A DNA stretch of 64,000 nucleotides from positions 62,001 through 126,000 of the IMG/VR virus record IMGVR_UViG_3300027844_001828. The stretch is one strand, 5' to 3'. Every line of letters starts with the position of its first letter. The first letter of the stretch is position 1. Below are positions 16,338 through 51,179 of the stretch, piece by piece. The translations under genes were made by a program, and so were the position numbers. A model generated the notes under the pieces. The model was not told where the DNA came from, did no database searches, and was given only the letters and a program-made list of their open reading frames with translations.

Positions 16338-19300
16338 ATGAGCCACAAAATTGCCATCATAGCAGATTTACATCTAAATAATAATCAATACGGCAAGACA
16401 GTAGAAGGCAGTGGACTTTTACTAAAAACAGATGACGCTCTAAAAGCATTCAAGTTCACCATTGATGAAAGTATCAAAAGGAAGGTTGATCATTACGTAA
16501 TAGCCGGGGATTTATTTGAGCACCCGTCCCCAACAAGCAAGATCAGAAGGCTTGTCAACGCCGAATTGCAGCGTTTGATCGATAATAAGATACTTATTAC
16601 GGCTCTAATTGGTAATCATGACCTTTGCAACGAACACCACGCCCTTGAGCCCTTAGTGGGTTGGAACAAGGGGTTAAGGGTTGCTTCAGACTTCGGTGTT
16701 GAAAGAAAAGAGAAGGCCACATACGTCTATGTTCCCCACACCTTTGATATCGAAAAAAGAAAGAAGTCATTCAAAGACTACATTGCCAAATTAAAAGACA
16801 CGGTTCACCCAGAGCCCGGACATAGAATTGTCATGTTTGGCCATTTTCCCGTATTCGGAGCGTTACAAAACGATAGCGTTACAAATAAGAACGATAGGAA
16901 TGTGGCTATTGAAGAACTTATTGATCTAGATTATGATGCTATTTTCCTCGGCGATTTCCACAAGAGACAAAAACTTTCTGACTCTGGACAAATTTATTAT
17001 GTCGGAAGTCCAGAGAAAGTTGATTTCTCAGAGAGAAACCAAGACAAGGGATTTTGTATTTATGATGTAGTTACAAATGATATTGAATGGATCAATTATG
17101 AAGGTAGCCGACCGTTAATAGAAATAACTGGTGACAACGTTGATGAAATTGATCTTCAAATTGAAAACTTAGACCTCAATAACGCCATTGTGAAAATAAA
17201 AGTAACGGGATCTGACGAAGAGTTTGCTTATGTACAACAAAGATTTAATGAGTTATCTGGAAAGGTTTCAGAATCTGGCAGTGTATTCTTCGCCGGATTA
17301 GAAAGAGTACAGAATGAAGACGACGATGAAGACGACGAAGACAGTGAGTCTATCAAGGAGTTACATGCCGGATCAATAAACGTCTTCGACATTGTTCAGA
17401 AGAATATTGAGAGCGAAGATATTTCAGATGATGAAAAAGATAATCGCATATCAATCTTGAGACAGGTTGAAAAAGAAGTCGCTTCAGAATTGCAGTTGTC
17501 AACAGACGTTTCATTCAAAGACAAGCGAACGATAAAGTTTAAGAGTGTTAAGCTCCATAACTTTTGTAGGTTCGGAGAGAAGGACAACGTCGTCGATTTT
17601 GACAAGCTCTTTGAGGACGCAAACGGATCAAGCATGGCATCTATATCTGGCATCGTTGACGGGAACCCCTCTGAGTCAAATGGTTCTGGAAAGTCTACGA
17701 TATTAGAATCTATAGCATATGTTCTTTATGAAAGAATGCCGAGATTGTCGTTATTCAAAGACCCATCAAAGTCAAGAGATAAATCGAAGAAGACGACCTT
17801 TGAAATAATAAGGACAGACGATGCTGGAAAGTTTGCGTGTAAGGAAGCCTATGCCGAGTTGACTATGGAGGTCTCTGGAAGCGAGTGGGTGATTCGTCGT
17901 GGAAGAAAGGTTCAAAAGAATGACAAGCATACAGCAATTTTGGAACTCTCGAAAGATGGTGAGCCATACAATAGTAGAAAATCAAAAGACCCCAATGATG
18001 TGATCAAAGATTTGATCGGAGTTGATTATGAACCATTTTGCAACAGCGTGTTCTTTGCCCAAAAGGATACGAGTAAACTTTTCACAGCAACGCCTGGGGT
18101 AAGGATTGATACAATCTTGAATATTCTTGGCGTTCTTTCAGACATTACATCAGCAATAGAAAAGATTCGGGAGAGAAAGAAGACAGTCGCCGCCGAAATC
18201 TCGACTCTTTCAGGACGTGTTGATACCCTTAAAGAAATGTCAAGTCATGACGAAGATACGTTGGCGAGTAAAATATCCGAATTAGTCACAGAGACTGAAG
18301 AGTTTGACGAGAAGATAAAGAAGAACGATAAAAATACTGTAAAGATAAGGGGCTTGAAAGATAAGAAAGTCGCTCGCCGGGAAGAGATGAATTTATCATT
18401 GAAAGGATTAGATGATAAGATAGACTCGGTTGACGAGAAGGGTTCGGCAGAGTCTTTGAGCTTGAAATATGAGATATCCTCATGTGAAGATCAAGTGAAA
18501 GCTATTAATGAACGTGATAAAAGATTTTCTGATGATAAGGAAATACTCAGAGTTGAATACGAAAATTACTTGAAGATCAGAGATGGGATAAAAGAGCAGG
18601 ATCTTGAAGTTTCTCTTGAAAAAATTTCAGCTGCAAAATTAGAGAAGGTCGGATTATCCCAAAGCAAGTTTAAGTGTCAGGAAGAAATAGTTACCTTCGC
18701 CGGTAAAAGGGCACAGTATGAATCTGACGGATTACATGCAATGCAATCTCTTGAAAAATATAAGAGCGTGTTGAACACTGTTAAAGGGCAGGATGTCAAG
18801 TGCCCGCATTGTGGCTCAGTTCATGATAGGGATCACTACGATAAAGAGATAGATAATTTGAGAGAGAAGATCCGAGTTTCAGAAAGAGAAGCTGCGGAAG
18901 TGAAGGGTAAAAATAAGGAAAGCGAAAAAAGACTCGTTGGATTTGTAAAGACAGAAGAAGGATTGGATTTTGTTATTGACAGAGCGCCCCAAGTCGTTTC
19001 TCAATTGCAAAAGAGAAAAGATGCCGTCATTGGATTGGATGCTGTTGGTAAAAAGATCGTAGAATTGAAAAAAAGAATGGCGGAGCCCGTCTCTACTGAC
19101 ACCTTTGAGTCATTAGGTGAGCGCATGAAAGAGGCCAAGTCAAAACTTGAGGGGATACAGTTAAAGTACCACAAGATGAAAGAAGGATGGTTAAAAGAAA
19201 CCACCGTCTTGAATAGTGACATAAGAGCAATCAAGCATGACATTGTTATGATAGATGACAATGTGGTAATAAGTGAACAATTGAGTAAGACTCTCATGGG

Positions 19301-19916
19301 AAGACTCAGTGAGGCGGGGATAGAAAAAGCCAGATGGCAAGATTCATTGTCTACTCTCAGGAAATTAAAGAAGGATCTCAGTAAAGCCACAGATTCTCTT
19401 GAGGGGCATAGAAACGAACAGATAGGTATCCTTTATCTTGAGAGTTCATTTGGTAGTGATGGTGTCAAGATGGATATTGTTGATTACTATTTGCCCATCT
19501 TCAATAACCATATGGAAAATTTCATTACGATATTGACAGAGGGTAGAATAAATGTAAGTATAGATAGGGAGACTATGGAGCCTGTTATATTCGGTGCCAG
19601 TTCCTCATCGTATGAAATGCTTAGTGGCGGAGAGCAAGATGTAATCCGGTTAGCCGGTAATCTCGCTCTTGGTATGGTGTCTCTTGGTAGTAGCAGATCT
19701 CTTCCTGAGACTCTCTTCCTCGACGAGATATTTGGCGCTCTTGCGCCAGCGATGAAAGAGAGGGTGTTCAAGTTGATTGACCATCTCCGTTCATATTTTA
19801 ACAGGATTCTTGTAATCACTCATGACCTCGAATTGCAAACTAAATTCAGTCGCGGCATATATGTTCATAAAAATAACGGTATAAGCGCTGTATCATTATT
19901 AAATGACAATCATTAA
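16338..19916 (+). CDS. SbcD-SbcC (Mre11-Rad50) fusion nuclease/ATPase
   Basis: N-terminal ADLHL, AGDLF, GNHD, GHF, GDFH phosphoesterase motifs. Then LHNF, NGSGKST, coiled coil with a CPHC Zn-hook, LSGGE, LFLDE, ITHD. Confidence 0.93.
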   Translation: MSHKIAIIADLHLNNNQYGKTVEGSGLLLKTDDALKAFKFTIDESIKRKVDHYVIAGDLFEHPSPTSKIRRLVNAELQRLIDNKILITALIGNHDLCNEHHALEPLVGWNKGLRVASDFGVERKEKATYVYVPHTFDIEKRKKSFKDYIAKLKDTVHPEPGHRIVMFGHFPVFGALQNDSVTNKNDRNVAIEELIDLDYDAIFLGDFHKRQKLSDSGQIYYVGSPEKVDFSERNQDKGFCIYDVVTNDIEWINYEGSRPLIEITGDNVDEIDLQIENLDLNNAIVKIKVTGSDEEFAYVQQRFNELSGKVSESGSVFFAGLERVQNEDDDEDDEDSESIKELHAGSINVFDIVQKNIESEDISDDEKDNRISILRQVEKEVASELQLSTDVSFKDKRTIKFKSVKLHNFCRFGEKDNVVDFDKLFEDANGSSMASISGIVDGNPSESNGSGKSTILESIAYVLYERMPRLSLFKDPSKSRDKSKKTTFEIIRTDDAGKFACKEAYAELTMEVSGSEWVIRRGRKVQKNDKHTAILELSKDGEPYNSRKSKDPNDVIKDLIGVDYEPFCNSVFFAQKDTSKLFTATPGVRIDTILNILGVLSDITSAIEKIRERKKTVAAEISTLSGRVDTLKEMSSHDEDTLASKISELVTETEEFDEKIKKNDKNTVKIRGLKDKKVARREEMNLSLKGLDDKIDSVDEKGSAESLSLKYEISSCEDQVKAINERDKRFSDDKEILRVEYENYLKIRDGIKEQDLEVSLEKISAAKLEKVGLSQSKFKCQEEIVTFAGKRAQYESDGLHAMQSLEKYKSVLNTVKGQDVKCPHCGSVHDRDHYDKEIDNLREKIRVSEREAAEVKGKNKESEKRLVGFVKTEEGLDFVIDRAPQVVSQLQKRKDAVIGLDAVGKKIVELKKRMAEPVSTDTFESLGERMKEAKSKLEGIQLKYHKMKEGWLKETTVLNSDIRAIKHDIVMIDDNVVISEQLSKTLMGRLSEAGIEKARWQDSLSTLRKLKKDLSKATDSLEGHRNEQIGILYLESSFGSDGVKMDIVDYYLPIFNNHMENFITILTEGRINVSIDRETMEPVIFGASSSSYEMLSGGEQDVIRLAGNLALGMVSLGSSRSLPETLFLDEIFGALAPAMKERVFKLIDHLRSYFNRILVITHDLELQTKFSRGIYVHKNNGISAVSLLNDNH

Positions 19917-22923: not shown

Positions 22924-24639
22924 TCACTGCTTATTGTCCTGTTTGAAATCAATTATGCGCATGTGCCAGTCTTCTTCATCGAGAAATGATCTGTTGATGG
23001 AAAACAACACGTCAACGGTTTTCCCATGGAGTCTTTTCTTTATTCCTTTACCGTATGCTACGGAGTTAAGACCGGTGTTATCAAAGTGTACAAAGGCCCC
23101 TGTTCCACTCCCCCATTCTTTAACACGGTTACATTGTAAACCATTCGCTCTGAATATTGGAGTTGGGTTTCCTGGTCCGTATGGCTCAAGCATAGCGAGT
23201 CTTTCACAGAACACATCGTTAACTCTTAACATGAGATCAGGACTAAGTTCGCAATCATATGATATCGAGGGCTCTCCAATATTGTGAGCTTCAAGGTATT
23301 CCTTGACCTTCTTATCAAATATTTCCCAGGCCGTATCAATAAAGGCCGGGTCAAGTTCAGCGCCAGCGGCCATCTCATGCCCACCGTGAGCAATAAATAT
23401 TTCTGAGCAAGAATCCATTATTTCTTTGATATTCACGCCCTCAATTGATCTGGCACTACCTTTAATTTTCCCATCGTAGTTCCCGAAGCAGATTGTAGGT
23501 ACATTATAGGTCTCGGAGATTTTACTTGCGACAATACCAACAATGCTGGGGTTCCAGTTCTCTTTGTATAACAATGCGCTACTTTTACCGGCTTGGTCCG
23601 CGTCAAAAATTGAAATAGCCTCAACTGCCGCTTCCTTTTGAATCTTCTTGCGATCTTCATTTAATGACTTGAGATGCTTCGCGCTTACTTTAGCTTGCTC
23701 TATGTCTTCTGACATAAACACTTTATACGCATCTGAGGCGACAGTCATTCTTCCAGAGGCATTGATCATTGGAGCTATTCTGAATGCAATGTCTTCAGAG
23801 TTGCAATCAATGGTGCTTACATCCGCGACCTTGAATAACGTGCTGAGACCTACGTCTGTGCAAGAATTTAATTGGCGGAGTCCATTTTTTACAATAACTC
23901 TATTGGTTCCAGTCAATTCACAAACGTCAGCGATAGTAGTTAATGCGGCATACGGCATATATTTTGGAACGTTGATGATTGCTTCCTCTCCGCATTTTCT
24001 GGCAAGTTGAAAAACAAGCCCGCCTGTGCAATAAGGGGTGGCGTCATTCATTCTTGGATTCACAACCGCATCGGCATTGCTTGAAAAATTTTCTGGTTCA
24101 ATAATATGATGGTCAATAACAATGCAACGGGCGTCGGGGAGATGTGCTCTGATTTTTTCGATGTGTTTTCTAGAAGAACTTCCACAGTCCAATATTGCAA
24201 CAAGAGCATATGGCTTTTTACATATTTTTATGAAGTTCTCAACAGATCTGTCATTCAACCCATACCCGTCGCTGGTTCTTGAAGGTAAATAAACGTCTAC
24301 AGATGAAGCGTGAAGTTCACGCATCAATTTTTCGAACATATATGATGAGACGATTCCGTCAACATCATAGTCTCCAAAGACAACGACATCATGACCGCCA
24401 GCTGTAATACATTCCCGCATAGCGAGTTCTATGTTCTCAAGAGCCTCTGGTGGCTCGATGAGGTCGAATGGTGAATCGATCAAGGTCTTGATGTCCGACT
24501 TCTTTTTTATATGCTCGAAATTTCGGTTGGCGATTAATGAACAGAACAATTCGGCGACACCCTGTCCTTTTAATAAATTGAATTGGTCTTCTCTGTATAG
24601 TTTTTCTTTCCAGATCATGTGTCCCTCGTTGGTTGACAA
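22924..24639 (-). CDS. recJ: RecJ ssDNA exonuclease (DHH/DHHA1)
   Basis: GDYDVDG, DGYGLN, DCG, IDHH, TIADV, APMINASGR, GSARS, GGHEMAAG, LEPYGPGNPTP. Confidence 0.95.
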   Translation of the reverse strand: MSTNEGHMIWKEKLYREDQFNLLKGQGVAELFCSLIANRNFEHIKKKSDIKTLIDSPFDLIEPPEALENIELAMRECITAGGHDVVVFGDYDVDGIVSSYMFEKLMRELHASSVDVYLPSRTSDGYGLNDRSVENFIKICKKPYALVAILDCGSSSRKHIEKIRAHLPDARCIVIDHHIIEPENFSSNADAVVNPRMNDATPYCTGGLVFQLARKCGEEAIINVPKYMPYAALTTIADVCELTGTNRVIVKNGLRQLNSCTDVGLSTLFKVADVSTIDCNSEDIAFRIAPMINASGRMTVASDAYKVFMSEDIEQAKVSAKHLKSLNEDRKKIQKEAAVEAISIFDADQAGKSSALLYKENWNPSIVGIVASKISETYNVPTICFGNYDGKIKGSARSIEGVNIKEIMDSCSEIFIAHGGHEMAAGAELDPAFIDTAWEIFDKKVKEYLEAHNIGEPSISYDCELSPDLMLRVNDVFCERLAMLEPYGPGNPTPIFRANGLQCNRVKEWGSGTGAFVHFDNTGLNSVAYGKGIKKRLHGKTVDVLFSINRSFLDEEDWHMRIIDFKQDNKQ

Positions 24640-24661
24640 AGTGGCAATTGTATGCTATAGT
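24633..24661 (+). promoter_or_regulatory. sigma70-type promoter for dnaJ
   Basis: TTGACA-17 nt-TATAGT with an extended TG. Confidence 0.7.
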
Positions 24662-24744: not shown

Positions 24745-25857
24745 ATGGATTACTACGAAATATTAGGAGCCAAGAGGGGAGATACCGCCGCTACGATAAA
24801 GAAAGCGTATCGAAAATTGGCTCATAAGTATCATCCAGATAAAAACCCTGACAATAAAGAGGCGGAAGATAAATTCAAAGATGTCGCCGAGGCATATGAA
24901 GTTTTGTCAGATGAAAAAAAGAAGCCGATTTATGACAAGTTTGGAAAAGAGGGGTTGAAGCGTGGCGGAGGCGGCGGAGGCGGCGGAGGCGGCGGAGGCC
25001 AGGGTCAGGGCTGGGGTGGTTTTGCAGGCTTTAACTTCGGAATGGGACAGGACGATGGGATTGATATCATTCAGGTTCAGATGGGTATTGATGTTTACGC
25101 TGTAGCTTATGGCTCAGATAGGCAATTTAAGATCAATATTAACGACAAGTGCAAAACTTGTGATGGGTCAAGAAAAAAGCCGGGTGGGAAAGAAGAAATT
25201 TGCTCATCGTGCAAGGGCCAGAAATTTATAATAAGAAAGCAGGGCGGAATGATGTTTCAGTTACCCTGCCAAGCCTGTCAAGGCCAAGGTGGCACTTTTG
25301 ATAAATGCGAAAGCTGTCATGGTCATGGGGTCCAGGCAAGGACCATGACTATGAAGGTTAGTATTCCAAAGGGAGCAGGACATGGGATGAAGATAAGACT
25401 CAAGGGAGTCGGTAACTACTCTGTCGGAGCGAATGCTAAGGGACATATTCATTTTATCTTAGTCCTTGCAGAACATGAGTTATTTGCCATCAATGGATCG
25501 GATGTTCATGCTGGGTTGCCAATAACCTTCAAACAAGCCATTCTTGGGGGTGATATAAAGGTTCCGACCTTATATGGCGATGTGGACGTTACCTTACCTA
25601 AAGAGTCGAAGAATGGTGATGTTTTAACGGTTTCTGGATCGGGTGTCCCAAACAAGCCAAATAGTACCGTAAAGGGCGATCAATATGTCCATTTGATAGT
25701 CGATATGCCAAAAGGAGTTTCAGATGAAATTAGAGAAGTTATAAACGGCATTGACGACAGCGGATGTACATACGAAACCATTAATGAATACAATGGCGTA
25801 TGCGAAAATATAAAAAAAGAGATAGGCAGGGCTAATAATGAAGATAAAACTGGCTGA
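24745..25857 (+). CDS. dnaJ: DnaJ (Hsp40) chaperone
   Basis: MDYYEILG...HPD J-domain, G/F linker, four CxxCxGxG-like motifs, C-terminal substrate domain. AGGAG RBS before 24745. Confidence 0.95.
24964..24999 (+). repeat. (GGCGGAGGC)4 poly-Gly tandem repeat in the dnaJ linker
   Basis: Four perfect 9-nt units, in frame. Confidence 0.85.
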
Positions 25858-28800
25858 AACTCCACGTGAAGAATGGATATCCATAGAGTTCAACTTCCTA
25901 TACAGTGCATGGCATGCCCATTTCTCTATGGACGACCTGTCTCAAACCCAACAAGCATCAATTGATCAGGGCAATGAAGAGGTGGAGGCGGTAATGAACT
26001 CCACTTTCAGTGCCGATCAGTACGTCTCTGGGTATAGAAATGCTTTGAATGGCGATCCTGGTAAAATTCTTTATGATCCAGAAATAACTTTGAGTCAAGA
26101 ATTATCTGTGATGATTCAAACCATTGATACTAATGTTGGAAGAATTTTATCTGGTGAAATCGATTCGCTTAATATAGATACACCAGATATCTTTAACAAA
26201 TTTGTAGATTTCCATGTTTTATTTGGCGGGTTGGAGAATTCATATAGTAATTTCGACTTTTCACCAGGCTTGAGTAATTCGCTATGGCTTTTCAGGAGTC
26301 CATACAATGCCAGGTTTCCCAGATCGATAATCCTTGATGATGTACAAGAGGAAATTACCAGACGTGAGGAAAAAATAAAATCCTACCTCATGACACGGTA
26401 TGATATTGGTGATGAGATCAATGAGACATCAGATAGTTGGAGAATAATCGATGGAGAACTGCATTATGATAATGCGGTTGCTGACGACTTCGAGGAAGGG
26501 GTAGTTGATAAACTTATGAATGAAGACGCACATGCATCGGCGATCCTTTCATCCCTGAACTTATTTAACTCTACCGAACCAATTGACGGCGGGTGGGAGA
26601 GGGTTGAAACAAGAGTTATATTTGCCGAAGAAGGGGCTGTAGAGGGGTTGATTAGAAGGGTCACTGACGCTGACGACATTAGGGCTGTTCAAGATATTTT
26701 AGAAATCGGTCAGGGAGCGGTATTGACAGATTTGAGATTGAATACCGGGAGCACTTTAGACAATGCAACCTGGGTTATCGTAGGGAACCAAATATATTTC
26801 TTATTGTCTGAGTCTGGACTTTCTCAAGAAGATATAGTAGATCAGGTCACAGAAATTACTGGCCATGATGAACGCGCTTATGATAGATTGTCTACTGGAG
26901 GGTTTTTGAGAGATGATGTAGACAGTGGGGGAGGTCCTGATTTTGACCATCAGGTTAATTTAAGCGTCTTATTTAATGGTCTTGATACTGATCTTATTGC
27001 AGATGAATTCAGAAGTCAAGTTTTGATTATAATTCAGAGAGAGGAAGAAGCAATAACCGAATTTGTCTCGTCCAACTTATCCCAGAACTTTGACCATCAC
27101 GATGGTGTTTTTAGATTCACATTAAACCCAATGAATGATGACACAAGAGCAGACGGGGCTAAAAGGGCGTTGAGGGTCATGAATGCTCATGCCGAATCTG
27201 AAATTATAGCATTGTTGAGTGGGATATCTGTAAGCCCTCATTCAGCCTTTAATTGGAAACATGTGGAAACTGAAATTATATTAAGGCCAATTAACGACGT
27301 TTTGGACATGCTTTACAATCACGATGAGGGGAGAAGCATTGTCACGGCAGAGAGAACGTTGTGTCGGGATATGCTGCGAGAGCGAAATAGCCGTGCCATT
27401 GATTATTTAAGTCAGGCTTGTGGCAATGATATTGACAATCCACAATGGATAGTTCATGAGGAATCATTGTATATCCCAGACGGAAGCCGTTTGCGAAGCG
27501 TGGACGATTTCGGAGATATATTGGTAAGAATAGCCAATGCTGACGGTGAAGCCAAGCGCTCTTTTAGGGGTATGGGAGTTCGTTTCGCTGACGATGTGGA
27601 TGAAGATCGAGGGATGGAGACGCATGAGTACCCTGGCCTTTTTTCTAATCCAATGAGAATGAATATTGTAAACAGGAATGGTAGTTCACTGTCGGGTGAT
27701 TCGAGGGACGAGGTAGAAAGAATTAGGAATTTGTACAGCCCCCGTGCCGCAGACATACTTCAATTGTTATCTGGATCTGGATCTGGAACGGTCTATTCGA
27801 TTGCGAGTGCGAGTTCTAGGGTCTCTTTTGATAAAGATATGTTGACGGATTTGCAAATTAAAACCGTTCATGAATTGTTAAAGACATTAGATGATTCCGT
27901 TAGAGCAGATATTATATCAAATCTTGATGTTATAGTAAGACGTAGCGCAGTGTCGCATGATTTAGATTTTGATTTTCTATTTAGAGACGCCAACTTCTTA
28001 ATTGACATGTCTAATACGCATTCAGATATATATAGAGAGAGAAATATTGTTACGATGGAGGACGGAAGTGGAATCCCAAACTCGGCAGATAATATTCACG
28101 AAATACAGTGGCGTTTAAGAAGTGTAAATGATCGGGCATCTTCCTGGCTAGATAGCCACTTCCCGGAAAATTCATTCATATTTGAAATGGGTGAAGGGTA
28201 TGGGACTCTTTATGTTGATTTGAACATTCTCCAACCAAACCTCCTTATGTCACTATATGATGGGTTGACGATGGCTGACAACGATCTTAGATCACGATTA
28301 GGGCAAGCTCCTGGTTTTGGCGTATTTCCCACTTCAAGATTTACAGACAGGGAAGACAGGGATGAGGTGACAACTGAAGAGGAAGTTTCAGATATTGACA
28401 GAGAGGTTTGGTTGGAGTTCGACTTCTTATTTAGACCCTTTGAACACTTTCAGCAGTTTGTAGAGTTGACAGACAATGGACTTCCAGTGTCAACAGATGA
28501 TGATATGATGAACAGGTTGGAAGACATTGTTAGACCAATCATGGACGCTGCTAATGATTATGTCGCAGTAAATGTCGATGATGAAGCATACAGGTATGAT
28601 GCTGGCGAACTTGTTGTATTAGAAGAGAGAGATCATCAACTAGGATTATCTCCGACTGATCTTGATATGTTGAGAACCAATCTTGAGAATTTAGACCGAT
28701 CAGTTGTTCAGGCAATTGAGTCCGATCCAATTTTTCAATTGCATGATGTGGAGCCGACCACTTTCGATTCCGAACAAGAATTTAGTTTTGATTTTTTATT

Positions 28801-30628
28801 TAATACGCCACAAATATATACGAGTAATGGTTTAGTTAAATTATTTAATGGAAATCCAGTTAGAACAACTGTTGGGAACTTTGGATTATTGACAAATATT
28901 GTCAGGAGAAAAGTAATTTTGGCAAGAACATATCTTGACAGAGTTATTGGCTTTGATGCATATAGAATTCATTTTATGCCCGTCCTCGCGCCGCGATCCG
29001 GATTCTTGTTTATTGATTCTGATCAGGTTTCTGAAGAAGAGATAGAAGAGGTAGAAGATGCGCTTAGACAGTTGGATAAAGACGCTGGGGAAGAGATAAA
29101 TAGACATTCAAGATTTCGCGTAGAATCATTTGAAAAAGAGGAAATAAAACTCCAGGCTTTATTCCAAGATCCGTCAGGACTGTTCAACAATATCGGTTAT
29201 GATGATCAAGGATCGATAACGACGTTACGACCAGGCGGGCCATGGGCGTCCCCGAGTTCAGTGTTTCGGGAATTGAGTAGATACAACTCACTCGCCAGAG
29301 ATTTCCTGGAAAATGAAATAAAAGATAAATGGAAGCTTGAGGATACCGAGTTTTCTGCCGGATTGTATTTCAAAGAAAACATTGATCCGGCTGACAGAGA
29401 AAGAGTTGTGAAAGCTTTGAATAAAATGGATATTGAAGCTATAAGTTTTCTTAATTCTGATGACTCATACAATATTACAGATGAAATGAAAGAAAAAGTG
29501 GAGTCCGTCTCAGGAGAGTGGGAAGAGCTAATTACAAAGGTGTTGTTCAAGACGAGAGAATATTTGGACAGGTCTCTTAATTATGAAAATGATGCGGAAA
29601 AATCGATTTCAATTTCCGAGCAGGATATGGATGATATTGTAAAAATATTGCAGGATCATTATGAGGATTTAGTTATTCCAAAGTGGAGACACAGACTATC
29701 TGATGGTAATACAACCTTTGAATCCCCGCATTTTAAGATAGACCTTGGCTCAGATCAGAGTTTTTATTTGAGATCTGGTAATGATGACGAAAGGGCAAGG
29801 ATTATCGATCTGGGAAAACTGGCAATGGTAGAAATATATGGGATGAAGAGGGTTTTATTTACCGATACCATTTCAGAGCAAAATAATTGGAGTGATGAGT
29901 TCGGAGAATCTATTGAAAAGCTATCTGCTCTTGATGACTTCAGTTGGATTGGAGAATTTTTAAGCGATGAAGATAGAGAAAGATTGTCTGAGTTGATGTT
30001 TCGAAGAAGAGATTATTTTATAGCTGGTGCTCATGATGAAAAAATAGAAATGATCAGAGATAAGATTAGTAAAATTGGCGGACCAGTAGGGTATTCAACG
30101 ACATATTCTAGACTTTCTGATAAAATAGAATCCAACAGGAAAATTTATAAAGAATTCAAATCAGTTGCGGACAAAAATGATCTTTCAGTTCCAGAATTTC
30201 GATCCAAAGCAATATATGAGAATACAATATCTATGAATAATAAGAACGCTATCTTAACCAATAAGGTGTATGAAGAAGCCGCATATAATTCTGGGCCATA
30301 TAAAAATGACTATGATGGAACAGCAGAGAGTTTTGTTCTGTATCTTGTGTTTGACATATTAATAAGTATTAAGGATAGATATGAAGATGAAGAGTTTTCA
30401 GAAATCGTTGATCTGGTAAAATTCAACGAAGATATTTTTGATCAATTTGGCGATCCATTTGGTCCTATCAAGAGCGGTCTTGTAAAGGGTTTCATTCCAA
30501 ATACAAAGAAATTTATAGAGAGATGTCCAACTATTGAATCCTCCTTTGATACAACAGTCTATAGGGACATAAGAATTAGTATGGCGAAGATTATTAGAAA
30601 TGTCATAAAAAACAAGGGTTCGGAATAG
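25838..30628 (+). CDS. Giant acidic repeat protein A (1596 aa), putative internal virion protein
   Basis: Recurring W..(I/L).F.(F/L)L(F/Y) units. C-terminus homologous to the next gene. AGG-N19-GAA promoter at 25713-25737. Confidence 0.65.
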
Positions 30629-33600
30629 TGAGAATAATCAAAACAGCAGACTGGGAAGGCGCGACAGAGACAGCCATGTTCCCAGTATTATTCAGGGGTC
30701 AAGTGGGGCTCTCGACAGATAGAGCGAGGGTTTTAGAACAAGCCCAAACACTTGCCAGGAGTATTTTGCACACTGTTGTTCCAGATGGAGACTCGGATGA
30801 AGAGCACTACATCATTGAGGACACAGTTTTGAGATATAAGGCTGGTGGTGTTATTACTGCTGGGGTGTTGCAAAGATTGCGCCTCATGGAGTCTGAAATC
30901 TCGAATCATATCGTTCAAGAGGATGAGAATCAATTAGAATGGGTCGAACTTCCATTTAGATTTCTATATAATGGGGAATTGCAAGATATATATGTTAATA
31001 ATTCGATAAGAGACAGCCCGTCTCATATAACAAGCATATCTCAAGCTGGAGAATCGAGGGTTTTTCCATACCTTAATGACAATGCCACAACCATCGCGGA
31101 TTTCAGATTTGTTAACATCGTGAATCGTGGGGAAAGACCCCAGGTTAGGGTGAGAGGATCTTTGGACTCTGATCATCATATTAATAACTTGATGGCAATT
31201 GAGAATCAATGCATATTGAATTTCGCATCTTATGATATTAATAGTAATGGCGGAACCATCCCTTATGATGGCACTTGGAGTAGAGTTGATACCGTGGTTC
31301 TTTTCAAGAGTTGGTCGGAGGTTGCTGGAATTGTATCTATCCTCGAGCAACGGGCTGGCCACCTTGGCGAACGATCACGACGTGAACGTCAGAATATTAT
31401 TCAAATTATCCAAGGGTATGAACGAAGTGTGTTAATGAGCCTGCATGAAGATTGTCCATTGGGGGATATTGAAACTGGTCCAGATTGGTTGGTCCATGAA
31501 CGGGCGTTACATTACAAATTGGATGGGTGCTTCCATGAATCTCAGGGTGACAGAAGCGTCTGGGATTTACTAAGTTCCAGGGACGAATGGGCCGTTGAGG
31601 CACTTGTCGCAAGGGGATTTGATGTTAACACGGAAAACCCAGAAGATGAATTTGATGAGTCGAGCATTGAATGGCGACGATTTGAATTTGATTTGCTTTA
31701 TGATGGTGATCTTTTCCAGCAAATTAATAATGATGAAATCGAAGGGGATTCTTCTTACTCTCGTATAAACAGAGATGCTATAGATGGAGTAATGACCGAT
31801 GCTCAATTGGAAGTAGATCGATACTTAAGAAGTACTAATTCTGTAGAGGGGAGAGATTTTGTATATCGTGATTTTCCCGGAGATGCACATAGAAATTATC
31901 CATCTTATGCTGTCGGATCTGAATTGGATAATCGGACTGATCGAAAAAATATTGCAGATATCGAACGTTCAGCTTTAATGAAGGTCTGCCACTATTCTAA
32001 CAGTCTGAATAGACGACATCCAGAAATGTCACCGGTTTCTGCGGCTGGATATGTTTTGTTTAAGGCGAGAAGCACTCTTGATACATTTTTCCTGGGTGGG
32101 GTGTCTGACGATGAATTAGTAAAGATAAAGAATTCAGGAGAAGAAAACGTATTAGACTATTTGACGGAAAACCATCCAATCACAAATGTATTTAACCCCC
32201 CGTGGCTCGTATACGACAGGTATTTATTCATTGATGAAAATATTATTCCGATAGATTATTTTGAAGAGTTCCTTTTAGATAATGATGCAGACACTATACA
32301 ATATTTATCGGATGAAGGCTCTTCATTTCAAAGAAATCCCGATGGGATAAGAGTCCCAGAAGGATATATTAGATTCCCTGGATTGAAGTTTTTGTTCAAT
32401 TCTCTTTCTGAGTCTGGAGTTATGGTGAGAGATGCGAACCCGCCAACAAGAATTCCAATTGGTGGTGAAGTTGCAGAGATTATAGAGTTAAGAACGGTTC
32501 AACAGCAAGAGTTGGTAACATGGATGGATGCTGTTGCAAACTCAGAAATTGCATATAGTTTCACCAATAGCGCGGACGCTGTGAAATTCAACAATAGACT
32601 TTATGTGTTGGAAAATGGGGCTTTAAATAATGACGAGGTATTAAAACGCACAATATTAAGCTGGGATCGCACCGCAATACAATCTGTGGAACATGCGTCT
32701 GAAACAATGCCGTATGATTTCATATTCCCCGTCAATACTGAAGATCATACTGTCCCAGAACCGCAATATCCAGAAGATGAGCGGGCCGAAGCGAATGAAA
32801 ACTTGATAAACATGCTTTCTGGATACGATTTGGCTAATAGACCATTAACTTTTGATATTTCAAACACGGGCATCTTCTACGGGACATGGACAAGATTTGA
32901 CGGAACAGAATTATTGTTTAAGAGCGTGGATTATCTATATGACAATTGTAGGATAAATGGCATTCCTCTAAATCAAGAGACGTTAACACTGATTTCTAGG
33001 CAATTGCAGGATGTTGAAGATCAGTATGTAAGTAGTGGAAATGTTATTTTTGTCCCTCAGGAAGTGGCTCCAGAATTACTTTATACAAAAAACACCACTG
33101 TGTCGTCTGAAATATTTAGAAGCGATAATATTTTCAGAAATAATTTAGCTGATGATTTCCCCGGATTTACATTTGAAGATGGGGATGCGGACCCCAGAAC
33201 AAGAGTGAGAAACGGAGCCGATTTCCATCTTTTAGATTTGGATCTTTTGTTTAAGCCAAGATCTATGAGGATTCAGAATTTCAGTTTGAATGGAGGTCTT
33301 GTTCCAAGGGATATCATGGAAGATATAACAGAGTGGTGCTCAGGGGCAGAGGACTTATTTATATCCGAAGTTAATGCAGAATACTTTATTTTTGATGGTA
33401 GAAATGGTAAGATATTTGCCAGAGAAGATGCTAATCAATTAGAGACGAGATTATTGAGGGCGGAAGAGGGCGGAAGAAGCACTCTTTCGGAAAGATATCA
33501 GGGGCTTTTATTTACAGGTGGGCACAATGGAGCGCAAGGGCCTTCGGAGACCCCTGAAGGCAGAGACTTCGAATGGCTTGAAGCCCCATTGACTTTTATC

Positions 33601-35112
33601 TTCAATCCAGTTAATATCAGATGGAAGGTTAGATATATATTTCAACTTGCTCCATTCAATGATCAAGAATTGGATAAGGAACTTGCCGAATCCGTGGTTA
33701 AAGACTATGAGAGTGATCTAAAGAGATATTTGACAAGTTTTTTTCCAGATGATGGGGAGTGGATGGAGAAAGATGGTAAGTTGTATTACGCTGCAAATGG
33801 ACAGATTATTTCTAATCCATCGATCATGACAAAGATAATGGAGTATAACCATGCCGCTATCCGTCAGTTTACCAACTCAGGAGCATTCTCTGGTCAATCA
33901 TTGTTATATGAGGGAAACTTAGAAGCTGCATATGACAAACAATTTGACAACCAAGAAGACTTTATTTACATTGGTAATTTTTCAGATCTTAAAAACAATG
34001 ACGAGGTGATTCTTGCCAAAATGTATGTTGCCAAGTTTATTGAAGCGGTAACCAGTAGAAGGGTTAAATACGGAATAGATTTTGCCTTGTGGCAAGAGGG
34101 GAATGATAAGACATCGAGACTTTATTATAACAATAAAGACAGAAGTGGTGATGATATTAGTCAAACCATTGAGAACATGTATAGTGAGTATGAAGACAAG
34201 ACTCACGCCGTCATTAGTGCTTTGAGAGCCCATCCAGGGATGCGAGAGAGTTTACTTCGCGGAGAAGAGTACGACCTTATGGAACAAGAGATGGATAGAG
34301 GCCGAATTAGTTTGGCGGAAGAACTTGTTAGCAGTCAGATTAGCGAAAAAGAGACTTGGGCAAGAGAGTTAGTGAGCGAAGATGACTATCAATATATTGC
34401 AAAGGAACTTAGAGAGTGGGATTTGGTTGCAGAAGGCACCGATGTTCCTACGGATAATATTGCTGGTATGGGGGCGGATATAAAAAGACATTTATTTAAG
34501 AGGGTCATAAATAAATACTCTCTTGTTTCAGGGTATGATTTAGGATATTCTGAGGGCGTATTCAGGAATGACAATGACAATCATTACAAGGCGATCTCTG
34601 ATTTAATGGGTAAATTATTGTCTAATAGATTCACTCATAGGAAGTTTGACAGGTTGGCAGAAAGTAGAGGTTTGGAGGTCCCAAAATTTAGAGATTCTGA
34701 AAACATATATGAAAGCGCAATCGCAATGAATGAGAAAGACGCTTTGCCAATAAACAAGTTAATCGTAGAGGCAGGGTATAATATTGATGTCGGCAGGGGC
34801 GTTAATGACCAGGTCATAAAAGGCAGAGTTTCACATTTAATTAAGTACCTTCTTTATGATATTCTTGAGAGATCCCGATCTTCAATATTGCGGAGGTCCG
34901 AGGAGACTAATTATAAAAAAGTGATAAAAACAGTTTCGACCAGACTTATAAGCCAAGAGGTTATAGATAAATTAATTTCAACTAATGTCCATGATCCTAA
35001 AAAGTTTGTGGAATCTTTCCCAACAATAGAATCCACTTATGAGTCACTTGCGTATAAAAATCTTCGAATAGCGATTGCTCAAGAAGTGATGAAAATTGTT
35101 GGAAACAAATAA
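30628..35112 (+). CDS. Giant acidic repeat protein B (1494 aa), paralogue of A
   Basis: Shares VP.FR...IYE..I.MN.K.A...NK...EA.YN and KKF.E..PTIES...Y...RI..A with the upstream gene. TAG/GTG coupling. Confidence 0.65.
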   Translation: MRIIKTADWEGATETAMFPVLFRGQVGLSTDRARVLEQAQTLARSILHTVVPDGDSDEEHYIIEDTVLRYKAGGVITAGVLQRLRLMESEISNHIVQEDENQLEWVELPFRFLYNGELQDIYVNNSIRDSPSHITSISQAGESRVFPYLNDNATTIADFRFVNIVNRGERPQVRVRGSLDSDHHINNLMAIENQCILNFASYDINSNGGTIPYDGTWSRVDTVVLFKSWSEVAGIVSILEQRAGHLGERSRRERQNIIQIIQGYERSVLMSLHEDCPLGDIETGPDWLVHERALHYKLDGCFHESQGDRSVWDLLSSRDEWAVEALVARGFDVNTENPEDEFDESSIEWRRFEFDLLYDGDLFQQINNDEIEGDSSYSRINRDAIDGVMTDAQLEVDRYLRSTNSVEGRDFVYRDFPGDAHRNYPSYAVGSELDNRTDRKNIADIERSALMKVCHYSNSLNRRHPEMSPVSAAGYVLFKARSTLDTFFLGGVSDDELVKIKNSGEENVLDYLTENHPITNVFNPPWLVYDRYLFIDENIIPIDYFEEFLLDNDADTIQYLSDEGSSFQRNPDGIRVPEGYIRFPGLKFLFNSLSESGVMVRDANPPTRIPIGGEVAEIIELRTVQQQELVTWMDAVANSEIAYSFTNSADAVKFNNRLYVLENGALNNDEVLKRTILSWDRTAIQSVEHASETMPYDFIFPVNTEDHTVPEPQYPEDERAEANENLINMLSGYDLANRPLTFDISNTGIFYGTWTRFDGTELLFKSVDYLYDNCRINGIPLNQETLTLISRQLQDVEDQYVSSGNVIFVPQEVAPELLYTKNTTVSSEIFRSDNIFRNNLADDFPGFTFEDGDADPRTRVRNGADFHLLDLDLLFKPRSMRIQNFSLNGGLVPRDIMEDITEWCSGAEDLFISEVNAEYFIFDGRNGKIFAREDANQLETRLLRAEEGGRSTLSERYQGLLFTGGHNGAQGPSETPEGRDFEWLEAPLTFIFNPVNIRWKVRYIFQLAPFNDQELDKELAESVVKDYESDLKRYLTSFFPDDGEWMEKDGKLYYAANGQIISNPSIMTKIMEYNHAAIRQFTNSGAFSGQSLLYEGNLEAAYDKQFDNQEDFIYIGNFSDLKNNDEVILAKMYVAKFIEAVTSRRVKYGIDFALWQEGNDKTSRLYYNNKDRSGDDISQTIENMYSEYEDKTHAVISALRAHPGMRESLLRGEEYDLMEQEMDRGRISLAEELVSSQISEKETWARELVSEDDYQYIAKELREWDLVAEGTDVPTDNIAGMGADIKRHLFKRVINKYSLVSGYDLGYSEGVFRNDNDNHYKAISDLMGKLLSNRFTHRKFDRLAESRGLEVPKFRDSENIYESAIAMNEKDALPINKLIVEAGYNIDVGRGVNDQVIKGRVSHLIKYLLYDILERSRSSILRRSEETNYKKVIKTVSTRLISQEVIDKLISTNVHDPKKFVESFPTIESTYESLAYKNLRIAIAQEVMKIVGNK

Positions 35113-35124: not shown

Positions 35125-35427
35125 ATGCCATTATATATGTTAGACAAAAAGACGTATGAAACTTTCCCCAATCTCAATGAAGATGACCCAAAAAATGAGA
35201 TCCCAGAAGAGCAAATAAGAAATATCGGGAATAACTTGGGAGAGTATTTCGGAGCATTCATGTTGTTTGGATTATCTCTACAAGGACAGCCAGTATTGGT
35301 AATGTCTGGATCATCCGGGATGGAACATTTGGCATTGAAGAAGTTCGCAGAAGACGTAGTCCTTGGCGAATCAAATGTTTCACTAATACCATTAGACGAA
35401 GAAGAAGAAGAAGAAGAGGAAGACTAA
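35125..35427 (+). CDS. Hypothetical protein with poly-Glu tail
   Basis: ORF with a GGAG RBS. Confidence 0.6.
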   Translation: MPLYMLDKKTYETFPNLNEDDPKNEIPEEQIRNIGNNLGEYFGAFMLFGLSLQGQPVLVMSGSSGMEHLALKKFAEDVVLGESNVSLIPLDEEEEEEEED

Positions 35428-35428: not shown

Positions 35429-36724
35429 ATGAAAACATTTTTAATAGATACGAATGTCCTTTTGCACGATCCCAATTCAATAGAGTCGTTTCAGGAAAAC
35501 AATATTGTGATTATACTTTCAGTATTGGGTGAAATAGACGATTTCAAAAATTCTCCAGGTGAACTGGGGGCAAACGCAAGAGAGGTTGCGAGAAAACTTG
35601 ACAAGTTAAGTCAAAAGGGGAATATTTTCAAAGGCGTAAAACTCCCAAGCGGTGGTACAGTAAAAATTTATCCATACCACAAAGTTCCATTGACCATTAA
35701 TCATGAAGAGGACGTTGACCACAAGATACTATGCGAAGCAAAGCACTTGAGATCAAACGATGTTGATGCCAGGATTGTGACCCAGGATATTATCTTGAGA
35801 CTCAAGGCCAGTGGCCTTGAGATCCCCGTTGAAGATTATAAGAAGGGGAAGAAGGAAGTTGAAAAGAAAAAGAGTGGGCATGTCTTTGACGTGTCCAAAA
35901 AAGACATAGATGAATTCGCTGAAAATAATTCAATTGTGATAAAAGATCATGGGTTGTTACTCAATGAATATATCAATTTAATCGCCAATGAAGACGGTAA
36001 ACACAGCATGCTTGGAAGAGTGGCGAAAGGGGACAGGATTAATAGAATCAGAGACACTTCTTCTGATTCTATTGTAAACATTACCCCTAAGAATATGGAG
36101 CAAATTTTTTCATTGGATGCCCTGCTTGATAAAGATATCAAGTTGGTGACCTTGCAAGGAAGAGCGGGAACTGGTAAAACATTATTGACTGTCGCCGCTG
36201 CCATTCATCAGATGAAGACTCATAATGATTATCAACGCATCGTTGTGACGCGACCGGTTATTCCAGTTGGTAAGGGAATTGGATTCCTCCCAGGAGACAT
36301 TGACGAAAAAATGCAACCGTGGATGAGACCGATTTATGATGCGATAGATATGATTAAGGAAAATGATAGAAATAGTAAAAAGACTCAGATTCCAATTAAT
36401 TTTGATGATGATGGTAAAGATATTCAAATTGCCCCCTTGTCATATTTGAGAGGAAGATCTATTCCGCATAGTTTTATGATTGTCGATGAGAGCCAAAATT
36501 TGACTCCGTTAGAGGTCAAAACTTTAGTGACAAGATGTGGGGAGGGTACAAAGATGGTTTTCACAGGAGACGTGGACCAGATTGACAACCCCCTCTTGGA
36601 CGACCAGTCAAATGGGTTGACCCACTTGATTTCTAAGTTCAAGGGACATCCATTACATGCTCACGTGTCGTTAGTTAAGGGCGTCAGGAGCGTGTTAGCT
36701 GCTGCCGGGGCAGAAATATTGTAA
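35429..36724 (+). CDS. phoH: PIN-PhoH (PhoH2/YlaK-like) protein
   Basis: PIN motifs IDTNVLLHDP and DHKIL. ATPase motifs GRAGTGKT, GFLPG, RGRS, VDESQN, GDVDQID. Confidence 0.93.
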   Translation: MKTFLIDTNVLLHDPNSIESFQENNIVIILSVLGEIDDFKNSPGELGANAREVARKLDKLSQKGNIFKGVKLPSGGTVKIYPYHKVPLTINHEEDVDHKILCEAKHLRSNDVDARIVTQDIILRLKASGLEIPVEDYKKGKKEVEKKKSGHVFDVSKKDIDEFAENNSIVIKDHGLLLNEYINLIANEDGKHSMLGRVAKGDRINRIRDTSSDSIVNITPKNMEQIFSLDALLDKDIKLVTLQGRAGTGKTLLTVAAAIHQMKTHNDYQRIVVTRPVIPVGKGIGFLPGDIDEKMQPWMRPIYDAIDMIKENDRNSKKTQIPINFDDDGKDIQIAPLSYLRGRSIPHSFMIVDESQNLTPLEVKTLVTRCGEGTKMVFTGDVDQIDNPLLDDQSNGLTHLISKFKGHPLHAHVSLVKGVRSVLAAAGAEIL

Positions 36725-49340: not shown

Positions 49341-49419
49341 AAATTGGTTGTATTATGCATAGTATGTCCACGTTTCGTGGACTTACTGTGTATTATCGGA
49401 GTGTAGGAAAGTCTGGTCA
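49341..49419 (+). repeat. 79-bp perfect direct repeat, copy 1 (hairpin plus tRNA-Pro 5' end)
   Basis: Identical to 50011-50089. Confidence 0.95.
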
Positions 49420-49474
49420 TCGCGCTTGTTCCGGAAACAAGAGAACGAAAGTTCGAATCTTTCCACCCAGACCA
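49397..49474 (+). tRNA. tRNA-Pro(CGG), atypical/chimeric
   Basis: Stem CTTGT/ACAAG, loop TC-CGG-AA, T-arm GAAAG-TTCGAAT-CTTTC, ACCA end. Acceptor mismatches G2:A71 and A4:C69. Confidence 0.6.
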
Positions 49475-49498
49475 GTTTTAATAATAGGAGATTATAAA

Positions 49499-49690
49499 AT
49501 GAATAAAATAGATGATATAGCGAATGATATTATTGCAGGAAGTGAATTGCCAAATTTAATTGAGTTAGTTCCTGAGAATTTTGTTCTTCTTGGAGAGATT
49601 AAAATGGCAATCATGAAAGCTGTTAAGATTGGGTTGAATATGGAAATAGAATTGCAAAAAGAATTTATTCTTAGTGGCAATAAGACTTAA
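49499..49690 (+). CDS. Small hypothetical protein
   Basis: MNKIDDIAND... with an AGGAG RBS. Confidence 0.5.
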   Translation: MNKIDDIANDIIAGSELPNLIELVPENFVLLGEIKMAIMKAVKIGLNMEIELQKEFILSGNKT

Positions 49691-49702
49691 GGAGAAATAA
49701 TA

Positions 49703-49792
49703 ATGTTAGAAATATCTATTGGTTTGGTAGTTGTAATAGTCGCATCATGTTCTTGGCTCGTATGGTTTATGGCAAAGAACGTATGGGGATAA
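49703..49792 (+). CDS. 29-aa single-TM peptide
   Basis: MLEISIGLVVVIVASCSWLVWFMAKNVWG, preceded by TAAGACTTAAGGAGA. Confidence 0.5.
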   Translation: MLEISIGLVVVIVASCSWLVWFMAKNVWG

Positions 49793-49808
49793 GACTTAAG
49801 GAGATACA

Positions 49809-50012
49809 ATGAAAGGGTTGCATTATGATGATGTTGGAAATCGTAAGTTAATTGAAACTTTGGTTACTGTTTTACTTCAAGATGGATTGAAGGGAGAAGA
49901 TATGATTGGGGTTTTAACTAAGAATGGAGCGTTTAAAGTATTGAATGGAGATCAATTATGTGCGGTTGCAGAAGCAATGGAAGAAGTTTATAAGGATATG
50001 TTGTTGAAATAA
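49809..50012 (+). CDS. Small hypothetical protein
   Basis: Preceded by the same TAAGACTTAAGGAGA 15-mer. Confidence 0.55.
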   Translation: MKGLHYDDVGNRKLIETLVTVLLQDGLKGEDMIGVLTKNGAFKVLNGDQLCAVAEAMEEVYKDMLLK

Positions 50013-50089
50013 ATTGGTTGTATTATGCATAGTATGTCCACGTTTCGTGGACTTACTGTGTATTATCGGAGTGTAGGAAAGTCTGGTCA
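50011..50089 (+). repeat. 79-bp perfect direct repeat, copy 2 (ends in a truncated tRNA-Pro 5' fragment)
   Basis: Identical to 49341-49419. Confidence 0.95.
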
Positions 50090-50108
50090 GCGATACCAAT
50101 TTATAAGA

Positions 50109-50184
50109 TGCCTCGTAGCATAACTGGTAATGCAACAGCCTCTGAAGCTGTTTTATCTTGGTTCAAATCCAAGCGGGGTAGCCA
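50109..50184 (+). tRNA. tRNA-Gln(CTG)
   Basis: U1-A72, anticodon arm ACAGC-CTCTGAA-GCTGT, T-arm CTTGG-TTCAAAT-CCAAG, GCCA. Confidence 0.92.
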
Positions 50185-50190
50185 TTTTAT

Positions 50191-50267
50191 AGGGATGAGG
50201 GCTTGTTGGTAAGCCGCATGCTCTGGAAGCATGAGTACTCTGGGTTCGACTCCCAGTATCCTGACCA
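50191..50267 (+). tRNA. tRNA-Pro(TGG), atypical
   Basis: CATGC-TCTGGAA-GCATG, CTGGG-TTCGACT-CCCAG, ACCA. A1:G72 mismatch, C33, A37. Confidence 0.8.
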
Positions 50268-50286
50268 TTTTCAGATGTTATTAGAC

Positions 50287-50314
50287 TTGACATTCACCTG
50301 TTTTCATGTATATT
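50287..50314 (+). promoter_or_regulatory. Internal sigma70-type promoter
   Basis: TTGACA-16 nt-TATATT upstream of tRNA-Ser. Confidence 0.5.
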
Positions 50315-50400
50315 AATTCCATTAGAGCTTGAAGACTGGCAGAAAACTGAAATTATGAATATCTTTACCGAAAGAATGCAAGCAGAGATAGGGTAACATC

Positions 50401-50490
50401 GGAGGGGTGGCTGAGTGGCTAAAGGCACCTGTCTTGAATACAGGAGGGCGTGAAAGCGTCCCGTGGGTTCGAATCCCACTCCCTCTGCCA
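50401..50490 (+). tRNA. tRNA-Ser(TGA)
   Basis: CCTGT-CTTGAAT-ACAGG, long variable arm, GTGGG-TTCGAAT-CCCAC, GCCA. Confidence 0.95.
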
Positions 50491-50493
50491 AAT

Positions 50494-50581
50494 GGCCTCG
50501 TGGCGTAACTGGCAGACGCGGCAGGATTTAAAATCCTGTGTCCGAAAGGGTGTTAGGGTTCGACTCCCTACGAGGTCACCA
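50494..50581 (+). tRNA. tRNA-Leu(TAA)
   Basis: CAGGA-TTTAAAA-TCCTG, long variable arm, TAGGG-TTCGACT-CCCTA, ACCA. Confidence 0.93.
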
Positions 50582-50631
50582 ATTAAAAGGTTATATGATT
50601 TGTTATTCAGAAATATATAGTGAGGTGAATA

Positions 50632-51042: not shown

Positions 51043-51092
51043 GAAGAGTTGGCCGAAAGATCGCAGGGTAGCGGCTACTGTCTCTTCTGCCA
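51042..51092 (+). pseudogene. Internally deleted tRNA-Ser remnant
   Basis: GGAAGAG/CTCTTCT acceptor stem plus GCCA, but only 51 nt with the anticodon arm missing. Confidence 0.65.
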
Positions 51093-51108
51093 TTTTATAG
51101 TTTTATGT

Positions 51109-51179
51109 GGAAAGCATCCGGCTGGATGAGGAGGTGCCCAATTGATCAGGGCCGTGGGTTCGAATCCCACTCTATAGCA
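51109..51179 (+). pseudogene. Chimeric tRNA remnant (5' of one tRNA fused to 3' of another)
   Basis: GGAAAGCATCCGGCTGGATGAGGAG is joined to a variable arm plus GTGGGTTCGAATCCCAC. The acceptor strands do not pair and there is no anticodon arm. Confidence 0.55.

Follow-up and report, generated by a model that had tools for sequence, protein, structure and literature searches.

Polyvalent phage proteins, as reportedly described by Iyer, Aravind, and co-workers, join different, mostly enzymatic domains, the phage proteins Ocr, ArdA, and Arn are acidic mimics of DNA, and the P protein of phage lambda is released from DnaB by DnaK and DnaJ. Here, we compare with these systems two adjacent giant genes, A (P0001; 25838..30628, + strand) and B (P0002; 30628..35112, + strand), in a 64,000-nt stretch of DNA that makes up bases 62001-126000 of a 235,624-bp IMG/VR record (IMGVR_UViG_3300027844_001828; 41% G+C, completeness estimate 93%). 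This stretch is hereafter the window, and coordinates refer to it unless stated otherwise. Together with a small number of relatives, the two genes form a clade-restricted orphan gene family that we call "X".

Like the polyvalent and other giant proteins of jumbo phages, A and B are very large, modular, and sporadic among related genomes. However, rather than several different enzymatic domains, such as polyvalent proteins reportedly combine, we found in A and B one non-enzymatic-looking module that is repeated many times and followed by a helical domain, with no detectable catalytic domain. With Ocr, ArdA, and Arn they have in common a strong negative charge, an origin in phages, and possibly an early expression, and in their build the giants resemble other tandem-domain arrays. 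The unnamed X proteins of other contigs share with A and B the C-terminal domain of about 300 aa, the N-terminal tail, the type of module, and the position between dnaJ and the orf100/PIN-phoH genes, but differ in having 2 to ~4 modules, a single gene copy, an average charge, and only 20-33% identity.

The open reading frames (ORFs) of the pair lie exactly where annotated. Gene A runs from an ATG to a TAG stop and encodes 1596 aa, and the GTG start of gene B (1494 aa) shares 1 nt with this stop codon, while the start of A overlaps the 3' end of dnaJ by 20 nt. In fact, BLASTP aligned residues 1323-1593 of A with residues 1222-1494 of B (28% identity, E=2e-21), and so the tandem paralogy of 25838-30628 and 30628-35112 that an initial annotation of the window had proposed is borne out, along with the location of the pair directly after dnaJ. 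The shared C-terminal domain of that annotation proved homologous in the two proteins, though larger than stated, with about 300 aa instead of ~170 aa, and its best-conserved part covers ~170-200 aa. In A this helical domain (29813..30625, +) carries the family signature and is defined by BLASTP against B and profile matches to eight relatives, and in B (34231..35109, +) by BLASTP against A and profile matches to relatives. Both proteins are acidic, again as annotated, with a net charge of -140 and an isoelectric point (pI) of 4.5 for A (2nd percentile of the genome's long ORFs), and a net charge of -96 and a pI of 4.7 for B (18th percentile). Overall, A is the more divergent and more acidic paralog and B the more conservative one. 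The C-terminal domain of B is nearer to the relatives (E=6e-21 vs 4e-12 for that of A), and the N-terminus of B (V-RIIKTADW) fits the family motif. No third copy of the module or of the C-terminal domain was found in the phage genome.

Ahead of the C-terminal domain, each protein is an array of 11 units (A array, 25838..29812; B array, 30628..34230; both +). These begin at about residues 9, 115, 249, 365, 469, 594, 703, 854, 975, 1096, and 1224 in A, and at about residues 1, 101, 213, 345, 467, 576, 690, 750, 862, 979, and 1106 in B, where the unit at residue 690 is short (60 aa). Units were delimited by cutting both proteins at a recurring strand motif, and 21 of them align over a common pattern. 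Whether the repetition is significant had been set beforehand as the test of the annotated repeat, and in windowed BLASTP, 19 distinct non-self matches scored 22 bits or more, whereas 60 shuffles averaged 0.83 such matches (maximum 4). Our first loose iterative repeat hidden Markov model (HMM) was rejected as circular and replaced by cross-validation between the two proteins. Here, the HMM built from the B units alone scored A at 37.7 bits (shuffle maximum 7.0), and that from the A units alone scored B at 15.9 bits (shuffle maximum 8.1), with the cross-protein matches beginning at the independently chosen unit borders. The divergent repeat is real, although its unit is longer than the annotated 90-100 aa, at ~100-130 aa (mean ~115).

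The units have diverged strongly from one another. Identity between adjacent units is below ~20%, and comparison of unit pairs gave z>3 in 11.7% of them. At the DNA level, the only repetition in the array is a 28-nt stretch that codes for a (D/E)FxFDFLF strand, which suggests that the duplications are either old or have diverged quickly. Moreover, two sets of units are positional counterparts in the two proteins (A3-B3, z 6.9; A5-B5, z 7.0), and so part of the amplification is older than the gene duplication. The eleventh unit of B (residues 1111-1201) scored 25.5 bits with an HMM of the second unit of the relatives, and the inner units of A and B are linked more weakly in sequence to the relatives' units (4-11 bits vs a shuffle maximum of 6.5).

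To identify further members of the family, we ran an exhaustive hmmsearch with the alignment of the A and B C-terminal domains against 1.84 billion protein representatives. This returned A, B, and eight further representatives (E from 9e-16 to 5e-4), found in at least seven other contigs. Six of the eight are 472-530 aa long (P0004-P0008 and P0010, the ~500-aa relatives), one has 309 aa (P0003), and one has 884 aa (P0009), and none of them has a Pfam or PHROG match. In the C-terminal domain alignment, one Tyr and one Asn are invariant, and residues of Phe, Lys, Gly, Ala, Tyr, Leu, Arg, and Thr are nearly so. The ~500-aa proteins consist of a short basic-hydrophobic tail, two modules, and an all-helical C-terminal domain of ~300 aa, and over their full length they can be aligned with the final two modules and C-terminal domain of A and B. 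The tail reads M/V, then K/R, I/L, K/R, and a hydrophobic residue ahead of the first Trp-containing strand, and is present in A and B too; it may resemble the type of peptide bound by Hsp70, which we take as a lead only. The net charge of the relatives is -1 to -4 per 100 residues, close to the genome mean of -2.7, and for this reason the strong acidity of A and B is a derived trait of the amplified modules and not a property of the family.

The two relatives of deviating length call for separate comment. P0003 is a fragment, as a scaffold gap of 10 N (L004:3535-3544; JGI contig Ga0216253_10012164) splits this X gene into proteins of 332 and 309 aa, and the upstream 332-aa piece, which bears the tail motif, adds at least two modules, to give about three in total. 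P0009 (L005:133-2787) has a C-terminal extension of ~160 residues beyond the family domain, for which the C-terminal domain of ribosomal L7/L12 is a sub-threshold match (E 0.0027). Alternative searches added no members. Word-index protein searches, which depend on shared 5-mers and on length, and in which the A query did not retrieve B, recovered nothing beyond the queries or two members already known when run with A, B, or the ~500-aa family alignment. IMG/VR pattern scans with the C-terminal domain alignment and a three-member family alignment gave no relatives, and an HMM search of all ORFs at PhoH-anchored loci (80 from IMG/VR and 80 from metagenomes, among the matches listed) gave no further X but did reveal two outgroups that lack it; closer relatives in the metagenomes may have escaped this search. 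We regard it as solid that X is a previously unnamed and very small protein family.

The genomic position of X is shared as well. In the contigs of the relatives, the common gene order is SbcD-SbcC fusion, other genes, RecJ (- strand), DnaJ, X, a ~100-aa ORF (orf100), PIN-PhoH, RlaP, and RNase T, and the present phage has this same order with A and B in place of X, that is, a tandem pair where the relatives have a single copy. The overlap between the start of X and the stop of dnaJ measures 20 nt in the present phage and in L004, and 4 nt in L006, L007, and the P0005 contig. In L003, a GTG directly after the dnaJ stop restores the family N-terminal tail that is missing from the database protein, and in L005 the X gene overlaps by 7 nt an upstream fragment of 45 aa that is not identifiable as DnaJ. 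The overlap of start and stop, as read from the bases, is compatible with translational coupling. Two more distant phages, L008 (a 255-kb IMG/VR contig) and L177, keep RecJ (-), DnaJ, and PhoH with no X in between. On the gene order in these contigs, the fixed position of X behind a phage dnaJ is solid.

At this one position, the number of modules per X runs from 0 (L008 and L177, which lack X) through 2, 3 (L004), and ~4 (P0009, counted by eye) to 11+11 in the present phage, and the nine extra modules in each giant sit between the first and the last one. Because the ~500-aa relatives occur at the same locus, have two modules and the C-terminal domain, and align end to end with the giants, A and B are read as amplified X proteins, which arose by module amplification and then tandem gene duplication, a point that we also regard as solid. 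An orphan phage family is in itself unsurprising; what is unusual is an amplification series at a fixed locus together with an invariable link to DnaJ. Moreover, BLASTP local alignments of the C-terminal domains of A and B with those of the relatives gave 20-33% identity, as against 54-61% for RecJ, 54-62% for PhoH, 47-58% for orf100 (in L003-L007), and 42-48% for DnaJ, by which X evolves about twice as fast as its neighboring genes.

The annotated lack of a recognizable family stood up in all searches, with no significant match in Pfam, PHROGs, PADLOC, PDB sequences, Foldseek, or the ESM Atlas. For A and B, there was no Pfam family above the cut-off, none of the PADLOC or anti-defense families, and a single PHROG match, to a family of 63 positions and unknown function (E=0.006). 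Cultured and GenBank phages gave no match by megablast or tblastn, the best hit of a profile search of the PDB had an E of 0.12, and feature searches of the ESM Atlas gave no match of 0.9 or above. A J domain with an HPD motif and a GrpE or nucleotide exchange factor fold were likewise absent from A, B, and the relatives, and the only J domain is that of the upstream dnaJ.

Structure prediction followed by a Foldseek search had been suggested as a check, and it revealed a repeated module fold but no convincing structural relative. The AlphaFold2 model of the 505-aa P0004, from a 10-row family alignment, had a mean predicted local distance difference test (pLDDT) score of 79 and a predicted template modeling score (pTM) of 0.60. 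It consists of two modules, each with a short first strand, a helix, a β-hairpin, and a helix, and then about a dozen helices. The model of units A8-A9, from 17 rows of non-overlapping unit pairs, had a pLDDT of 64.6, and unit 8 shows the same strand-helix-hairpin-helix order as in P0004 (pLDDT ~65-83); an alignment of overlapping three-unit segments was rejected, since it merely stacked identical residues. From these models, the module is predicted to be a generic β-α-β-β-α two-layer α/β sandwich. Foldseek gave a best E of 0.025 against the PDB, with none at or below 0.001, and 0.05 against BFVD, the ESM Atlas searched by shape gave a query template modeling (TM) score of at most 0.21, and a wide VIA-align search gave only noise-level or generic matches. 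By the tools' own calibration, these values are background.

Small α/β sandwiches of several kinds, including ferredoxin-like/ACT-like domains, the aIF2-alpha C-terminal domain, KH domains, the ring-building N-domains of secretins and the type III secretion system, and M20 peptidase dimerization domains, and also PDB ID: 2idl_B, matched at Z below 8 and perhaps share only a common arrangement with the X module. Compared with these sandwiches, the module is without sequence similarity, and it is without the sixth element of the ferredoxin fold. A KH topology with a GXXG loop was not found in it, and for the C-terminal domain no fold was recognized at this level of analysis.

The probable operon promoter of A and B lies upstream of dnaJ. 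A sigma70-type promoter-like site (24633..24661, +; TTGACA, 17 nt, extended -10 TGcTATAGT) agrees with the consensus at 11 of 12 positions and is the best such site within 22-39 kb. Here, the SigH-like promoter of the initial annotation was not recovered, as a scan for AGGAWWW-N10-14-GAATW gave two matches in the window, where 3.3 are expected by chance, and none near A and B. In a genome scan for TTGACA, 16-18 nt, and TAnRnT (often TATAGT, and often with an extended TG), there were 31 sites on the + strand and 2 on the - strand, and this strand bias argues that the motifs are real promoters. Those in the window include sites at 9538, 16264, 24633, 49036, and 50287. Of all sites, most lie at 55-224 kb of the genome, with only three in the first 50 kb (at 11, 21.5, and 23 kb). 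Together, the motifs look like host-sigma70-dependent promoters of the phage. No terminator-like site was found at a gene boundary from dnaJ to phoH; two + strand matches (26936 and 32032) lie inside the giant ORFs, and such matches overall are at the level of shuffled DNA. Given the promoter upstream of dnaJ and no boundary terminator up to phoH, the five genes from dnaJ through A, B, and orf100 to phoH are most likely transcribed as a single unit.

The first gene of this putative operon encodes a type-I DnaJ (24745..25857, +) with J, zinc-finger, and C-terminal domains (Pfam DnaJ, DnaJ_CXXCXGXG, and DnaJ_C). Its real start is almost certainly the ATG at 24745 and not 24673 as in the mechanical ORF list, for AAGGAG lies 6 nt upstream and the N-terminus then reads MDYYEIL; the leader between the promoter and this ATG is ~77 nt. 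The best bacterial matches of the phage DnaJ are ~37% identical and scattered over many phyla, and are uninformative on the host. As there is no Hsp70 in the phage record, this DnaJ would have to work with the DnaK of the host. After the giants comes orf100 (35125..35427, +; between X and phoH), which is identified by its conserved translation, has no Pfam or PHROG match, and ends in a tail with nine Glu and one Asp. Since a homolog (31% identity) is kept in L008, which lacks X, orf100 is a part of the DnaJ/PhoH cluster and not a companion of X. The downstream anchor is a PhoH2-type PIN-PhoH fusion (35429..36724, +; Pfam PIN_4 and PhoH; PHROG 2765 at 5e-103), a type of protein described as an RNA helicase/RNase pair (PMC7824862). 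Many contigs of jumbo phages encode a highly conserved counterpart, and we found 297 relatives in IMG/VR. Upstream of dnaJ, a RecJ-like exonuclease (22924..24639, -; Pfam DHH, DHHA1, and RecJ_OB; PHROG 2484 at 1e-73) serves as the other anchor and holds an equal position in L004, L007, L008, L177, and the P0005 contig.

The wider neighborhood of A and B comprises replication, repair, and RNA-metabolism genes (RecD2, DnaE-type polymerase, SbcCD fusion, and RecJ), with a DnaB-like helicase encoded elsewhere in the genome. The SbcCD fusion is a 1192-aa ORF (16338-19916, +) in which an SbcD-like phosphoesterase (Metallophos, residues 4-209) is joined to an SbcC/SMC-like ATPase, and a fusion of ~1188 aa is also present in L007 and the P0005 contig. 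Further along the window are eight tRNA genes (49397-57104, +; Pro-CGG, Gln-CTG, Pro-TGG, Ser-TGA, Leu-TAA, Glu-TTC, Leu-GAG, and Leu-TAG). Outside it, the genome has six consecutive giant ORFs on the + strand (G000:C1:1060-31181, loci L088 and L089), of 1308, 956, 1403, 1184, 2334, and 2760 aa. None of these is similar to the HMMs of the X module or C-terminal domain, the three that were scanned had no PHROG match, and they may be a structural or tail region or further orphans.

Near-identical DNA is present in marine and seawater metagenomes, with at least half of the region's sampled words in 12 runs, and the A and B proteins are also encoded on a 252,658-bp contig. Accordingly, the source is an uncultured marine jumbo phage. 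It has no close cultured relative, as the identity of its DnaE-type polymerase to phage records does not exceed ~35%. Across marine samples, the protein variants amount to one amino acid difference in A and, in B, a difference at the start residue only, and no variants in module number or joints were found in four metagenome runs. In two seawater metatranscriptome libraries, contigs cover pieces of the A and B genes at an identity of at least 99%.

Short of an even chance, but as our tentative preference from genomic context, X may be a non-virion, intracellular multivalent scaffold or decoy that is tied to DnaJ and host DnaK, and in this phage its arms would have become more numerous and more acidic. 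As such, X would be produced within infected cells in the early or middle phase and would not be part of the virion. The conserved C-terminal domain would supply a core activity or an anchoring contact, and the modules would act as protein-binding arms, and their amplification and acidification would yield an acidic, multivalent scaffold or a decoy that engages host proteins. DnaJ, made alongside X and acting together with host DnaK, would fold or hand over the aggregation-prone multi-module X proteins. The variable module number, the early- or middle-looking operon, and the attached chaperone gene form a pattern suggestive of an accessory, host-facing role, and the fast divergence of X and its presence in some phages and absence from others fit such a host-interaction role better than a core replication role.

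Several points weigh against this proposal. The function is judged from context, with no homology to a protein of known function, and the promoter sites are consensus matches and not measured starts. The RNA-library contigs of A and B are compatible with transcription but are no proof of it, DNA contamination being possible. L008 and L177 have a DnaJ and no X, so that this DnaJ does not serve X solely, and the adjacency of the two may be incidental. The prediction of a complex between the C-terminal domains of A and B scored 0.00, which is evidence neither way. Lastly, no structural module was located with Pfam Terminase_6N, tail sheath, and HK97-type capsid models and PHROG scans of 16 large ORFs, and the statement that A and B are not in a late region hence draws on their neighbors and promoter type only. 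Either the morphogenesis genes have diverged strongly, or they lie in the ~7% of the genome that is missing.

A bolder form of the scaffold or decoy proposal, to which we give little credence on present sequence evidence, has X as a new host-takeover class, in which the helical head would work with the phage DnaJ in using or diverting host DnaK while the arms capture host targets. Arm number would then be under arms-race selection, and the 22 acidified arms in two proteins of the present phage would be its extreme.

Equally doubtful, in our estimate, is a part for X as a replication or recombination accessory, such as a helicase loader or replisome organizer, that is remodeled by DnaJ and host DnaK on the model of lambda P. 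The location near RecD2, the DnaE-type polymerase, the SbcCD fusion, and RecJ would suit this, as would the DnaB-like helicase in the genome and the conserved physical link of X to dnaJ. Yet L008 and L177 have the same cluster without X, and X evolves much faster than the replication genes. It is also acidic, with no recognizable DNA-binding or ATPase motif, and a rise from 2 to 11 modules is hard to square with a stoichiometric replisome part.

Arrays of DNA mimics, one of the roles named in the initial annotation, would use their acidic modules to sequester DNA-binding proteins of the host, for instance restriction enzymes or proteins of the nucleoid, with more modules giving more capacity. 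The charge of A and B might recall Ocr, ArdA, and Arn in this respect, but we judge this unlikely also, for the acidity of the ~500-aa relatives does not exceed the average of the genome, the second module of P0004 is net positive, the structural match to Arn is within the chance range of the tool, and no PADLOC or anti-defense family was matched.

Still less probable is the virion-associated role, likewise among the original suggestions, by which A and B would be packaged alongside the DNA as ejected or internal head proteins, or would form an assembly scaffold that acts as a capsid template, with DnaJ assisting assembly. Large size and acidity would be in keeping with it, and with the structural module not located, the distance of A and B from it is not measurable. 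What speaks against a virion role is that the genes lie in a sigma70-type operon amid replication, repair, and RNA-metabolism genes, that the orthologs are ~500 aa long and of average charge, that X is missing from the two phages that keep the cluster, and that BFVD matches to internal virion and tape-measure proteins (E of at least 0.1, TM of at most 0.16) are noise. That A and B might not be real genes, but chance long ORFs or decaying remnants, as their want of named homologs and extremely divergent modules could hint, is barely credible in view of the uninterrupted 4.8- and 4.5-kb ORFs with complete family-type termini, relatives in at least seven other contigs with conserved synteny, a confident AlphaFold2 family model, a sequence virtually invariant across many marine samples, and the representation of both genes in RNA libraries.

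With X, a new protein family and domain pair is added for which Pfam, PHROGs, PADLOC, and the PDB offer no detectable relatives, and that amounts to about ten clusters at 50% identity among 1.84 billion representatives. As the phage is widespread in seawater (at least 12 samples), A and B are environmentally relevant. The family provides a clear natural series of domain amplification (0, 2, 3, ~4, and 11+11) at one chromosomal position, and even if X is not DnaJ/DnaK-dependent, the A/B pair would be a good model for the divergence of long arrays of similar domains. Moreover, the constant link to a full-length phage DnaJ gives a handle on why certain large phages encode a J-protein themselves. 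Should X be a DnaJ/DnaK-dependent effector, phage chaperone genes would be connected to host takeover or counter-defense, and if the host-takeover class were to prove true, it would be a chaperone-coupled multivalent decoy or anti-defense system unlike any described.

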